A DNA stretch of 64,000 nt from Adineta vaga (lineage: Eukaryota > Animalia > Rotifera), in the NCBI GenBank assembly GCA_021613535.1, contig CP075496.1, positions 6,820,001 to 6,884,000 of the forward strand, in the 5' to 3' direction. Position numbers and translations under genes: made by a program. Under the pieces are notes generated by a model. The model ran no database searches. It saw only the letters and a program-made list of their open reading frames with translations, and was not told the origin of the DNA. Of the stretch, positions 51,651 to 57,304 are shown in pieces. How positions within the stretch are numbered: position 1 is the first letter of the stretch; the number at the start of each line of letters is the position of its first letter.

Positions 51651-52499
51651 TCATTTTTTTCTCAATTGATGTTTTCTTTCGATCGTGAGAATGTTATTCC
51701 TGTCGGATAATTTTCCATAATTTTCTCTCTTTTTGTATATATGCGCCTTTTTTATTCGTGTGCAGTAGCTAGTCATTCATTCATCCAATCATCTCATGTT
51801 TTTCTTCTTTAATACTTCAACTATCATTGTGCACATTATTCAATAAGTTTGTATGAAATACACACTTATTCATAATTTTGGTGTTCCTCTTTTTCTTTTT
51901 GATGAATAATCTTAATACGCATAAAAAACAAAGAAATGTATTATTACTTGTTTGTGCAAGTACACAAATAATTCATCATTTGCAAGGAATCTTTGTCATG
52001 ATTGATTCATACGTCAGCAAAAAAGTAAATTATAAAATTTTGATTACCCATGAAGCCATAACGACGAGCAATATGATTTCAAGCTTTGCACTTGGAAAAT
52101 AGTATGTCGACCGTTTAAGTAAATACATAAATATGATTCGATAAAAAAAGAAATACTTATTGAATACGTAAAATAAAGAAACATGCGAGGCAATCGATGA
52201 CGTATTTTACCCTTTCTCCGCTTCTTGCTATGACGAATATCACCCTCTAAAAAGTCTTCTTGTTTTGGAGTCAGGAAAGAAAAAAATAGACGAGAACAAA
52301 GAAGGGAAAAACATAGAACCCTTATTTTTCCGTCCGCTATTCACAAGGATAATTTCGCAAGAAATGTATTTTTTTCTAATGACGATTCAACATATCCAAT
52401 AACAAAGGAGAAAAAAAAAGAGAAGGGTGGTGAGGGGAGAAAGAAAGTGAGAGAGAGGGAGGGAGGAAGGAAGAAAAGGAATGTGAATGCCGCGTCGAC

Positions 52500-52508
52500 T
52501 ATATAAAG
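52500..52508 (+). promoter_or_regulatory. Putative TATA box upstream of AMD1
   Basis: TATATAAAG lies ~115 nt before the ATG, downstream of a purine/G-rich tract (52420-52480). Confidence 0.4.
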
Positions 52509-52616
52509 AAAAAATAATCTTCACGTACATTTGTAGAAAGCAACCTTTTTCTTTTAATAACTTCACTCGTTTGTCGCTCAACAGCGAACTACTCGATAAA
52601 ATCGACGTATATCGCA

Positions 52617-54366
52617 ATGACTGGCCATTTCTTCGAAGGAGCTGAAAAGCTATTAGAAATCTGGTTTGTTGCTGGTGGTAACGAATCGGGTAAAGCAACA
52701 ACACATAATGATCTTCGTAATATTCCACGGTAATTTATAAATTTTATTTCATTATTACTATATACGATGATTTCTTTTTAAAAATCTTTAGAGATCTGAT
52801 TGAAGAAGTATTAGGTTTGGTTAATTGTAAAGTGCTTAAATATGCACAGTCGGCTACAACGGATACTTATGTATTAAGTGAATCAAGCATGTTTGTTTTT
52901 CAAACTCATTTTATCTTAAAAACATGTGGCGAAACGACATTACTTCATGCTGTTCAACCAATGTTGGAACTTGCACGCGATTACTGTGGATTTGATATTG
53001 TCGATGTAGGAAATGAACTAAAAAATTTCTCTTGAAAAGAATATGAATTTTGTTTTTGCTTGTTTAGCAAATCTTCTATAGTCGTCGTAAATTTCTTCGA
53101 CCTGAGTTGCAAAAAGCACCACACACAAGTTTTGAACATGAAGTAAATAGCGAGATTTCGAAAGATGTCATCAGAAATGCATATTGTCACCTTTGTACTT
53201 TAGGTCGCTTATCTTGATTCAATCTTCGAAGGTAAATATTAGCAATAATGACATCATTTTGTAATTACTCAAGTTTTCCTTGCTTGTAGGTGGTTGTGCT
53301 TACGTTCTTGGTCGTACCAATGTTGATTGCTGGTAAGTTGAACTGATCTCAGTTGTTATCTAACGAACAACTCATATCTAATTCTAATTCAGAGAATTTG
53401 AATAGGAGAAAAGCACTTTCTTTTTTTGTAAAAATTAAACTTTGTTCTATCGAGATACCAGGTTTCTATCGTCTGTAGACAAAATGTAATCTGAAGATTT
53501 CTGATAGACACTTGAATATGCGCATCTTTTTCTGTCTACAAAGGAAACATATTTTCGCATATGGAATGTTAAATATCTAGTACCTAGTTTATAACTGCCA
53601 ATAACATTCCAATCTATAACAAGAGATAAAGAGAGCATTGAGTAAGTTGAAAATCAAAACGTGAGGAAATGTGGGATACTATCCAATATAATATGTGAAG
53701 ATATTTGTAATGAATATTTTTGATTCTTTAGGTATTTATACACACTGGATAAAAACTGTGTTAGTACAAAATCAGATCAAACATTGGAAATTATCATGAC
53801 CGATTTAGATTCGGAAAAAATGAAAATTTTCTACCAGGAATATACAAGTTCAGCTGCTGAAGCAACAAAAGTATGCTATTCTTCTGAGAAAATCAATTTC
53901 CGATCGATAATTTTCTTTCTATAGAAAGCCGGCATTGATAAATTATTTCCAAATGCAAAAATTTTCGATTATTTATTTGATCCATGTGGTTATTCAATGA
54001 ATGGTCTTTTACCCGATGGCCATTATTTTACCATTCATATAACACCAGAACCGGATTTTTCATATGTTAGTTTTGAAACAAATGCTTCTTACAGTCAATA
54101 TCAAGAATTAACACGAAAAATTCTCAAAATGTTCAATCCAGGCAAATTCACAACTACAATTTTCGGTGGCACTGTAAGTTATTTTGTCTTTTTGTTTTGA
54201 AAATTAATCTTATTCATCATTTATTTCGATTTCACAGGCAGCAACAAGTCTTGATACGCAACGAAAATTGTTCTTATTTTCTGACTACGGTCGTGTTGAT
54301 CACCAAATTGTTTGCTTGGTTGATCATGATCTTATTTACAGCTATTACAAAAAGCATCCAAGCTGA
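52617..54366 (+). CDS. AMD1: S-adenosylmethionine decarboxylase proenzyme
   Basis: [13 protein letters not shown], pyruvoyl cleavage site [34 protein letters not shown] and [18 protein letters not shown]; ends YKKHPS-TGA. Confidence 0.97.
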
Positions 54367-54615
54367 GGATTCTGCAACACCGTCTGCGTGTGTCGTCTAA
54401 CATCTGTCGACATGCACGCAAGATTGAGTGTTGCATTAGCACAACTTAGCAAAAAGAAACTTATGAAAATAATTCCATCAAACATTTCTGTACAATGGGC
54501 ACCATTGATTCAAATATTTGTCAAAAGAGATCTGGTACGATTACGGTTAACATCAAAGAAACGAACGAAGAAATTGAAGTATGCATTTCATCACAATACC
54601 AGAAAGTATAGATAA
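54367..54615 (+). other. In-frame 82-codon extension after the AMD1 UGA (candidate readthrough tail)
   Basis: The frame stays open from 54367 to TAA at 54613-54615; the track ORF 54388..54615 is in the same frame as the AMD1 CDS. Confidence 0.6.
54373..54435 (+). promoter_or_regulatory. RNA stem-loop 6 nt downstream of the AMD1 stop codon (candidate readthrough element)
   Basis: Nested helices TGCAACAC/GTGTTGCA, TGCGTG/CACGCA and TGTCG/CGACA. Confidence 0.65.
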
Positions 54616-54871
54616 TATTTGCTCAATTGCTGGCCGTTGTAGATTAGTGTTACAGTTTTATTTTCATGTGTTCTTTTTGTGTTTTGATTTTTTTTAACAA
54701 CATTAATCGAAGCAACATTGAGAAGAAGAAGAAAATAAATGAATGATTATATATATTCATATAACCAAAACTAATTTATTAAATTTATTTTAATAAGACA
54801 GAATCAAAACTAAAATAAGACAAAAATCATTTATCGAATTGATACTGTTTTCTCTTCTATAAATGTTTATT

Positions 54872-55638
54872 TCAACTTTCAATTCGTTCAAAGTTTTGTG
54901 CTCGTCGTCCTGGATACGAAATGAAGAAGAAACAAATGTAAAAGAATGAAATATAATCATATCACTACTTACTATCACCAGCTATAATATCTAATCGACA
55001 GAGAATAATGCCGAATATTAAAACGAGGAGTAAACATCCACCACCGATATAGATTAACAATGATGCTGCATCAACGCCTAATATGAAAACATAGAAAACA
55101 AAATCGTAATCATAGAATTTAAAAAATGCAAAACTATTTTTTTCTATGAAAACAGACTGAAATACATTTCTTCTTATCTAGTTTTAATTAAAAAAAACAA
55201 ATAGAGTCGATTAGTAGAAATGATATTCTCAAGTAATGACATCATGGACATTGATTTTTTTAATATGAACGAAATATGATTTGTACAGAATTACAGACAA
55301 AACTCAGAAACGAGAAATCAATAAAATGAAGTTTATTAAACTACTCATCTGGTTGTGAGATTACCAAAAGAAAATAATATTTCATGAAAATTCTATTAAT
55401 TATATTCTTCATTATAAATTTTAGAAAAATATTCTTTGAATTAAACTCTAACCCGCAGAACCGATTTCCAATTGCTGTTAATTTCAATCACTTATCATAC
55501 AGAAAAGAAACGTAACTATGTCAAGAATATTGTCATCTTTATTACTAATAATTAATCTAACTTACCAAGAAGTTCGTTCGACACTTGCGGCATTTTTGTA
55601 TGTGAATATCCCATTGGAGCGAGCGGTGTACTTCTCAT
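54872..55638 (-). CDS. Small single-pass membrane protein (~71 aa), 3 exons
   Basis: Phase-compatible exons with GTAAGT donors give MRSTPLAPMGYSHTKMPQVSNELLGVDAASLLIYIGGGCLLLVLIFGIILCRLDIIAGDRRRAQNFERIES. Confidence 0.65.
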
Positions 55639-57304
55639 TTCTTCTATTACAGAGATATTTCGTCCTGTTGTGGATTTGTCTTATCAGTTCGAGTATATGC
55701 GACGAAATGCCTTCGTCAAGTTAGTGATATTAATATGCGAGGTACGTTTTGTGAATACATACGTGCATCACCCTTCTCTCTCTCTCTCTTTTTCACTCTT
55801 TCTCTTCTATTTATTGACTTTGGTCTTCTTTTCTCATTCTCTGTTGTTCTAATACCTACTGGTTCTTTATGATGTTTCAAACCAAATAAATGTCCTAGAC
55901 AATTTGGTTTTTTTCTCTTTCCGAAGAGAGAAATACGAAAAAAAGAAAAGACCACAGCGAAAAAGTGACGAGAAAAAAAGACGAAAAGACTGAATATTAA
56001 CAATTACAATTGGTGATATAATAAAATAAAAGATATGGTCGTAAAAAACAGGTATTTATTTTATGCCCTTGAAATTTAATGAAAGACACATACAGAATAA
56101 AAAATATTCAATTTATCGACTTGATGTGAATAATATAACTGACGTTTTTGAATGATTTGAAATGCTTCAAAAATAAATACAACCCAAAAGCAAACTATAA
56201 CCTTTCAGATTTTTTTATGGATATCCATGAAAATGTGATTTATAGTTTATCGTTCGAAATATTTTTCAGGATACTAGAAAATAAACGCAGCGAATCATAA
56301 TCTTGAAAACTGCTTTATATCTTAGAATAGAAATGAACGATATCGGAAATGATTTCGAATATGTAGGTATCTTATCAATATTTTGCCAATATCTATTGAT
56401 TTCTCAAATGAATTGTACTTTCATACCTCATCGATACATGATCATGTTTTTAATCATAGGAACACTTAATTATTTCTGAATTTTTCCATCGATAAAAGTA
56501 ATACTTAATCATAGCACATTCTCTACGATATTTTTTCCATGTCATAAGGTGAAATAAGATATTTCATATAGACATATAATCATCATTATTTTATTTCTTC
56601 TAAACCTGCACACGTTCAGTACAGAACATATGATCTTCCTATACTTTCATTACGTCGCAATGATTATGTTGCGTTTGTTCCTAGAAAGTAAATTATTTTG
56701 TGCACAGGACACATTAAACTAATTTTTCTTTAGAATCTATATTATATAAAAGGAATGAAACCTCATTAACACCTCATTTCCATCAAGAGCAGAAAAATAG
56801 AAAACGTCTTTTTTTATAAAATATACGTGTACAAAACAGATTGAAAAACGAATTCTAATCTTTGCACATAAATTAACAAGAATAGAATAATCACTTTTCA
56901 ACTAACTTAATTCAAAAGCAGAAAGTATTCTTTTCTTTTCTTCATAGAAAGATTTTTCGATAGATGTCACTAATCTATTTGATATAGTCCTTGAATAGTA
57001 AATCAATATCAAATTACAATCTATCACTAAATAGTCTCATTATACCATCAATAAATCTTATTTTATTTGAATATTCAATCAGAATGTTTTTTAATTGTTT
57101 TCTAATTTGAGATTGAAACATAGCCAATCATATCCATCCGATTTGCAGTGCTGACTCAAATCTCTCAACTCTCATTCTCATCTAACAATATATTTACTTT
57201 TTTTCCAACTTCGATAATATCTTCTGTTCTGTCTTCATTTGCATTTGAATTTTTTCCCATTGAAAATTCTTCAAATCGATTTGTAAATCTCTCTTTTAGA
57301 TCAT

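Follow-up and report, generated by a model that had tools for sequence, protein, structure and literature searches.

A conserved hairpin downstream of the AMD1 stop codon in the rotifer Adineta vaga as a probable stimulator of stop-codon readthrough

Does a stem-loop that starts a few nucleotides after the stop codon of a rotifer gene help ribosomes to read through that stop? The question was raised by a stretch of 64,000 nucleotides of Adineta vaga (assembly GCA_021613535.1, contig CP075496.1, positions 6,820,001 to 6,884,000 of the forward strand), hereafter the window, whose positions are counted from its first letter. Three exons of the gene concerned were found to match the Pfam family SAM_decarbox (PF01536), which identified it as S-adenosylmethionine decarboxylase (AMD1), a gene of polyamine synthesis. 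The initial annotation had described a GC-rich stem-loop just 3′ of the AMD1 UGA and had proposed it as a cis stimulator of recoding that compensates for the non-leaky UGA-G context and that may itself be stabilised by polyamines. On comparison with homologues, the hairpin was read as a cis-acting 3′ stem-loop that, in AMD1 mRNAs of bdelloid rotifers, probably stimulates readthrough of the stop codon, with a probability of about 0.7.

Structure and conservation of the hairpin

The three helices and the 12-nt loop of the initial annotation were recovered exactly. Helix 1 was formed by 54373-54380 and 54428-54435 (8 bp), helix 2 by 54385-54390 and 54415-54420 (6 bp) and helix 3 by 54391-54395 and 54408-54412 (5 bp), and the two strands of each helix were exact reverse complements. 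The predicted fold contained three further pairs (54382-54384 with 54422-54424), giving a stem of 21-22 bp in total around the loop. The segment 54362-54440, stop codon included, was predicted to fold at -32.2 kcal/mol (z -3.56), a value equalled by 1 of 200 dinucleotide shuffles, and the segment 54367-54441, stop codon excluded, at -30.1 kcal/mol (z -3.81), equalled by none of 200; the proposed check against shuffled controls therefore came out in favour of the structure. The high GC content that had been noted was also borne out, with 50.8% in the hairpin against 29.9% in the window, and only 0.5% of the 63-nt windows were found to be as GC-rich.

Nineteen homologues were collected, namely the second AMD1 copy of the same genome and 18 metagenome or assembly loci that are probably from other bdelloid rotifers, and the resulting alignment (A4) contained 20 distinct sequences, the window's own included. 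The second copy (L002; contig 1, 6148890-6149268, minus strand) was 76% identical and was found to retain the UGA, the hairpin and an in-frame tail of 83 codons; its similarity to the window spanned the last exon precisely to the end of the tail open reading frame (ORF) and collapsed just after the tail stop. Eight loci (L003-L010) came from a metagenome scan with an alignment of the two genomic tails. A second sampling (L013-L028) was made through exon 7, independently of the hairpin, by protein representatives, word search and contig look-ups, and the same arrangement was found in all nine distinct loci that reached the region (L013, L014, L015-L017, L018/L019, L020, L021, L022, L024/L025 and L028). 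L026 and L027, which end before or inside the hairpin, and L023, a more diverged AMD1 with 59% identity in exon 7 and with its last exon outside the sequence, were not counted. The metagenome relatives grouped inconsistently with either genomic copy in two short-sequence trees.

The same hairpin was returned by RNAalifold on 10 and on 20 sequences, and 10 homologues folded singly gave -27 to -32 kcal/mol (z -2.4 to -5.8). Standard pairing was found in 96.8% of the 440 pair cells of the 20 sequences, against 9-52% when the 3′ partners were slid by one to three columns as a control. Changes on both sides were present at six pairs (54373/54435, 54382/54424, 54385/54420, 54386/54419, 54388/54417 and 54395/54408; 16 cells), and the observed covariation score was reached by none of 500 shuffles, so that covariation, which had been proposed as a check on this element, also supported it. 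The pairs 54386/54419, 54388/54417 and 54395/54408 were found to have changed state four to five times each on a rough tree. Several of the six pairs contained G-U intermediates, and since a G-U pair is a C-A mismatch on the opposite strand, the molecule under selection is read as the mRNA strand.

The arms were also found to be constrained at synonymous sites. Third-position changes per site were 0.2 in the arms and 1.59 elsewhere (permutation p = 2e-5), and dS was 0.16 in the arms, compared with 0.7-0.95 in the tail and in the adjoining coding sequence, so that synonymous change in the arms was suppressed about 5-fold, with about two changes per site in the loop. Changes in the 3′ arm were C-to-U opposite G or had a matching counterpart in the 5′ arm. 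The compensatory double changes were found to alter residues (Cys to Tyr with Ala to Val, Val to Ile, Cys to Asn) with pairing intact; as amino acids were replaced and pairs were kept, it is the RNA, and not the encoded peptide, that selection preserves. In L018, L020 and L022 the loop had 3 nt in place of 12 after a deletion, and the sequence immediately 3′ of the stem was free to vary. By these comparisons the hairpin is a selected, conserved and covarying RNA structure and not a product of chance.

Several other structures around the stop codon were considered. The pairing of GCUGA (54362-54366) with UUAGC (54436-54440), by which the stop codon was thought to be sequestered, is present in the window and was found in only 32% of the cells across 10 homologues; it was rejected as probably a chance pairing. 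An AUCC/GGAU stem around the stop (54356-54359 with 54367-54370), returned by RNAalifold on 10 sequences, was rejected after 20 sequences gave only two invariant pairs and no covariation. A pseudoknot of the loop with downstream sequence was rejected as well, the best duplexes being weak (-2 to -8 kcal/mol) and inconsistent in position. The 21-nt 5′ arm, searched with up to two mismatches, was found only in the two AMD1 copies of the whole 100.8-Mb genome, and an origin from a repeat or transposon was rejected on this ground. No match at the hairpin and no selenocysteine insertion sequence (SECIS) were found in Rfam over 52000-56000 at an E-value of 10 or less.

Stop codon, spacer and in-frame tail

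The AMD1 stop position was occupied by UGA in 15 sequences and by UAA in five, with no sense codon among the 20, followed by the presence of G as the next base in 19 of 20. Since both stop codons occur and G follows nearly all of them, the hairpin is not read as a specific compensation for UGA-G. This part of the initial proposal was refined; what stood was a conserved, covarying hairpin at a fixed distance of 7 nt from a conserved stop, followed by a coding tail. The distance itself had been given as 6 nt, which is correct for the sequence of the window. Across the homologues the closing pair 54373/54435 was present in only 10 of 20 sequences, and the conserved spacer is therefore 7 nt. The spacer contained no insertion or deletion in the 20 sequences, and its first five bases were almost invariant, one four-fold degenerate third codon position included.

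The frame behind the stop was found to be open to a downstream stop after 52-83 codons in all 19 sequences that reached one, and in L028 it was still open after 51 codons at the contig edge; at this base composition, about 8% of random codons would be stops. All differences in tail length were multiples of three, the 9-nt loop deletion included. The dN/dS of the tail was 0.30 outside the hairpin and 0.18 in the last 25 codons. By these low ratios and the free third codon position, the tail evolves as protein-coding sequence and hence is taken to be translated.

The C-terminal end of the tail contained a Lys-rich and aromatic stretch followed by Arg directly before the stop in every complete tail (RKYR, RKFR, RKER or KKPR), and the tail of the window ended in ...KYAFHHNTRKYR. 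By analogy with the vertebrate tail (PMC13025110), this peptide is a candidate nascent-chain arrest signal. No family was found in a Pfam search of the tail, and a word search for tail-like proteins gave no candidate, a weak negative in that such ORFs are seldom called as genes.

In a divergent lineage from activated-sludge and other metagenomes (L015-L017), the stem was found to differ by three double compensatory changes and to contain a U-U mismatch in its upper part, and the internal AUG was lost. The tail of this lineage, 52 codons long, did not contain an AUG at any position, and it would therefore be translatable only by readthrough or by non-AUG initiation.

The stop, the hairpin and the tail were found to share one exon, as four spliced public RNA assemblies were continuous from 54238 through all three. 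In these four assemblies no joint that removes the AMD1 stop and no base change (A-to-G) at the stop were found.

Readthrough and its alternatives

The readthrough stimulators described by Firth et al. 2011 (PMC3159437) contain stems of at least 12 bp located 7-9 nt after the stop in alphaviruses, furoviruses and coltiviruses, and readthrough was raised up to 10-fold by them in alphaviruses. Cellular cases in the same study are Drosophila headcase (UAA) and kelch (UGA-A), so that the leaky UGA-C context is not required (PMC3159437). The rotifer element was found to share with this class the spacer (7 nt), the stem size (21-22 bp), twin peaks of synonymous conservation over the arms with a variable loop, compensatory substitutions, the conserved spacer and a coding in-frame ORF after the stop. 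It is because the stop, hairpin and tail have the anatomy of these stimulators that the hairpin is read as a readthrough element. The rotifer element differs from the class in being a compact local hairpin with a loop of 12 or 3 nt, whereas the class stems close loops of 50-270 nt, and in belonging to a metabolic gene whose family members have either UGA or UAA as the stop; stimulation is the prediction made here.

We infer that readthrough occurs, that it is raised by the stem, that the tail arrests or destabilises and that polyamines modulate the process. With UGA or UAA in the A site, the stem, its base 7 nt downstream, would stand at the entrance of the mRNA channel and, as in alphaviruses, furoviruses and Drosophila kelch, would favour a near-cognate tRNA over the release factor. 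A fraction of the ribosomes would then pass the strong UGA-G or UAA-G terminator and would go on in frame into the tail of about 80 codons. Through its conserved, basic and aromatic end the tail probably serves as an arrest signal for the ribosome or as a degron of the protein, like the C-tail of vertebrate AMD1, and either would give feedback on AMD1 output.

Several points weigh against this reading. UGA-G and UAA-G are strong termination contexts, and the level of readthrough may stay very low despite the stem. The support consists of sequence comparison and RNA contigs, and the contigs show a transcript, not translation. The trees were built from short sequences, so that the count of independent compensatory events is approximate. 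The search that gave L003-L010 used peptide patterns that the arms themselves encode, and this biases the conservation of amino acids in the arms, not the synonymous sites. The middle of the tail was weakly constrained (dN/dS 0.47). The U-U mismatch of L015-L017 lies within the upper stem, and the tail of this lineage was just 52 codons long with a different end (KKPR).

Covariation and synonymous constraint prove a structure and not its function, and the hairpin might be conserved in the mRNA for some other post-transcriptional function, as a binding site for a double-stranded-RNA-binding protein, in stability or localisation, or in slowing ribosomes in the tail, with its proximity to the stop incidental. 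This was judged unlikely, as a role in stability or localisation needs no fixed distance of 7 nt from the stop, free of indels in 20 sequences, such an element has no need to head a translated in-frame tail, and the anatomy fits the readthrough class point by point. That the arms pair only as a consequence of a conserved peptide (CNTVCVC...DMHAR), or by chance, has on its side that the arms are coding and that the first search patterns were these very peptides, but frozen synonymous sites in the arms, compensatory changes that swap amino acids while the pairs stay, the fold being equalled by only 0-1 of 200 shuffles, and the covariation counts contradict it, and the probability left to it is negligible. 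The conserved arms, the variable loop and an almost invariant 22-nt 5′ arm would also suit a microRNA precursor, or destabilisation of the mRNA through Drosha cleavage at the hairpin. The stem, however, has just 21-22 bp with no conserved flanking (lower-stem) pairing, both arms were equally constrained, no Rfam family matched, and the loop was of only 3 nt in three lineages, which is at odds with canonical microRNA processing. The combination expected of a precursor (a stem of about 33-35 bp with a lower stem and a loop of about 10 nt or more) was not found, nor was a known family, and this origin is extremely improbable.

Two further explanations concern how the tail would be reached. A separate downstream ORF could start at the AUG that 18 of the 20 aligned sequences carry in the 3′ arm (54412-54414), and the hairpin would then regulate its initiation. 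This is very unlikely: the AUG was lost in L015-L017, whose open tail has no Met codon, the 15 codons from the stop to the AUG were open and in frame in all sequences, and the loop deletion of 9 nt preserved the frame. Reinitiation in eukaryotes is moreover inefficient after an ORF of about 330 codons. A duplex of 21-22 bp could also recruit an adenosine deaminase, and a single A-to-I change would turn UGA into the Trp codon UGG, so that the tail would be made from edited mRNA. The stop, however, lies outside the conserved duplex, the one pairing that includes it was not conserved, and the UAA variants would require two edits. No A-to-G change was found at 54365-54366 or in the hairpin in the four RNA assemblies, in whose contigs minority variants would be hidden, and editing of this kind was given hardly any weight. 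Selenocysteine recoding was ruled out by the UAA in five of 20 sequences and by the lack of a SECIS. Stimulated readthrough is the reading that was preferred.

The AMD1 transcript and comparison with known recoding systems

The coordinates of the features are collected in Table 1. Seven GT..AG introns were found to be spliced in AMD1 across the four RNA assemblies; the protein searches were run exon by exon. The 3′ ends of RNA contigs from three runs were located at 54699, 54739 and 54757.

Table 1. Features of the AMD1 gene, the hairpin and the tail, in positions of the window
Feature	Position	Strand	Basis or remark
AMD1 exons 1-4	~52533-52728, 52791-53005, 53068-53142, 53204-53229	+	RNA assemblies
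AMD1 exons 5-8	53288-53331, 53731-53870, 53925-54173, 54238-~54740/54757	+	RNA assemblies
Last AMD1 exon, coding part	54238-54363	+	ends ...YYKKHPS; RNA contigs join 54173 to 54238, GT..AG
AMD1 stop codon, UGA	54364-54366	+	stop in 20/20 sequences
Spacer GGAUUCU, 7 nt	54367-54373	+	alignment A4
Tail, 82 sense codons (54367-54612) and UAA (54613-54615)	54367-54615	+	hairpin in codons 3-23
Hairpin 5′ arm	54374-54395	+	basal helix 54374-80; upper helices 54382-84, 54385-90, 54391-95
Apical loop, 12 nt	54396-54407	+	sequence free to vary; 3 nt after in-frame 9-nt deletion in three homologues
Hairpin 3′ arm	54408-54434	+	54408-12, 2-nt bulge, 54415-20, bulged A54421, 54422-24, small internal loop, 54428-34
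C-terminal tail peptide ...LRLTSKKRxKKLKYAxHHNxRKYR	54541-54612	+	codon positions 1 and 2 almost invariant, position 3 varies
Remaining 3′ untranslated region	54616-54757	+	AAUAAA at 54734-54739; sequence and RNA contigs

The 5′ end of the AMD1 cDNA at 52533 was found to bear a loose end like a cDNA adaptor in contig X3, and a TATAAA box (52502-52507) was located about 26-31 nt 5′ of it. The intron of 399 nt (53332-53730) was removed in all four RNA assemblies, and low-depth contigs within or overlapping it (X1, 53306-53657; X2, 53511-53680) represent unspliced or alternatively processed RNA. A convergent minus-strand gene was found in 54760-55080; it has an intron that spans 54909-54971 and reads CT..AC in plus-strand orientation. 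This gene ends within about 100-150 nt of the AMD1 poly(A) region, and contig X1 was found to fuse both transcripts.

The leader before the AMD1 AUG (52617) was 84 nt long and contained no AUG, so that the rotifer mRNA, unlike that of vertebrates, seems to lack an upstream ORF of the MAGDIS type. In vertebrate AMD1, readthrough and stalling by the C-tail have been reported (Yordanova et al. 2018, as described in PMC8831848; PMC13025110): ribosomes that have passed the stop are halted where the tail of 127 codons ends, by a Lys-Arg-Phe clamp together with an Arg hook (PMC13025110). The clamp and hook of the human tail are Lys117, Arg121, Phe124 and Arg125 of 127, the Arg hook lying three residues before the stop (PMC13025110). 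No stimulatory stem-loop is mentioned in these accounts, and the tail is described for vertebrates only (PMC8831848, PMC13025110). The rotifer gene was found to share with its vertebrate counterpart a conserved in-frame ORF after the stop that is most conserved at its basic, aromatic C-terminal end. The rotifer tail was shorter (52-83 codons), and the spacing of Lys, Arg, Phe and Arg was not matched at its end in a comparison by published residue positions alone. In view of this length and residue spacing, the rotifer tail is not called homologous to the vertebrate C-tail.

Other recoded mRNAs were also compared. The SELENON redefinition element resembles the rotifer hairpin as a stem-loop a few nucleotides 3′ of a recoded UGA, recoding being predicted in the rotifer; it differs in that the rotifer stop is UAA in some sequences, which cannot encode selenocysteine, and in that no SECIS was found in 52000-56000. 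Antizyme is encoded by an mRNA of the polyamine pathway in which the decoding of a stop is altered and a 3′ pseudoknot stimulates a +1 frameshift. With antizyme (OAZ1 data in PMC9841425) the rotifer mRNA shares the polyamine pathway, a stop whose decoding is predicted to be altered and a nearby 3′ RNA structure. The event predicted in the rotifer is in-frame readthrough and not a +1 shift, with a plain hairpin and no supported pseudoknot.

At another UGA signal, spermidine was reported to increase readthrough more than 20-fold, an effect on decoding and not on a stem (PMC9841425), and a polyamine response of rotifer AMD1 readthrough is plausible by analogy. A wider proposal, which is tentative and has the odds against it, is that bdelloids independently evolved a read-through-and-stall feedback module of AMD1. 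The hairpin and stop would be its polyamine-responsive gate: high spermidine would raise readthrough, the tail ending in Arg would trap ribosomes and AMD1 synthesis would fall, in place of the absent sensor in an upstream ORF.

The literature search gave no work joining rotifers with stop-codon readthrough. It also gave none that describes AMD1 readthrough in invertebrates, and the papers that touch on both topics concern other subjects by their titles and abstracts. The hairpin is probably a further member of the class of readthrough stem-loops, and with the module as a whole rotifers may have invented AMD1 readthrough control independently and for a second time. Cellular genes with a well-supported RNA structure for promoting readthrough are few, headcase and kelch of Drosophila being the usual examples, and the rotifer hairpin adds a compact, strongly covarying case in the one gene where readthrough with ribosome stalling is a studied regulatory device. 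The element of 62 nt fits reporters, in which the override of strong UGA-G and UAA-G terminators by a simple stem, and any action of polyamines through that stem, could be tested directly, and L015-L017 form a useful natural variant for learning which parts of the module are needed. If the rotifer tail is not homologous to the vertebrate tail, the same solution may have arisen twice, and the extension of AMD1 past its stop would then be a generally useful way to meter polyamine synthesis.

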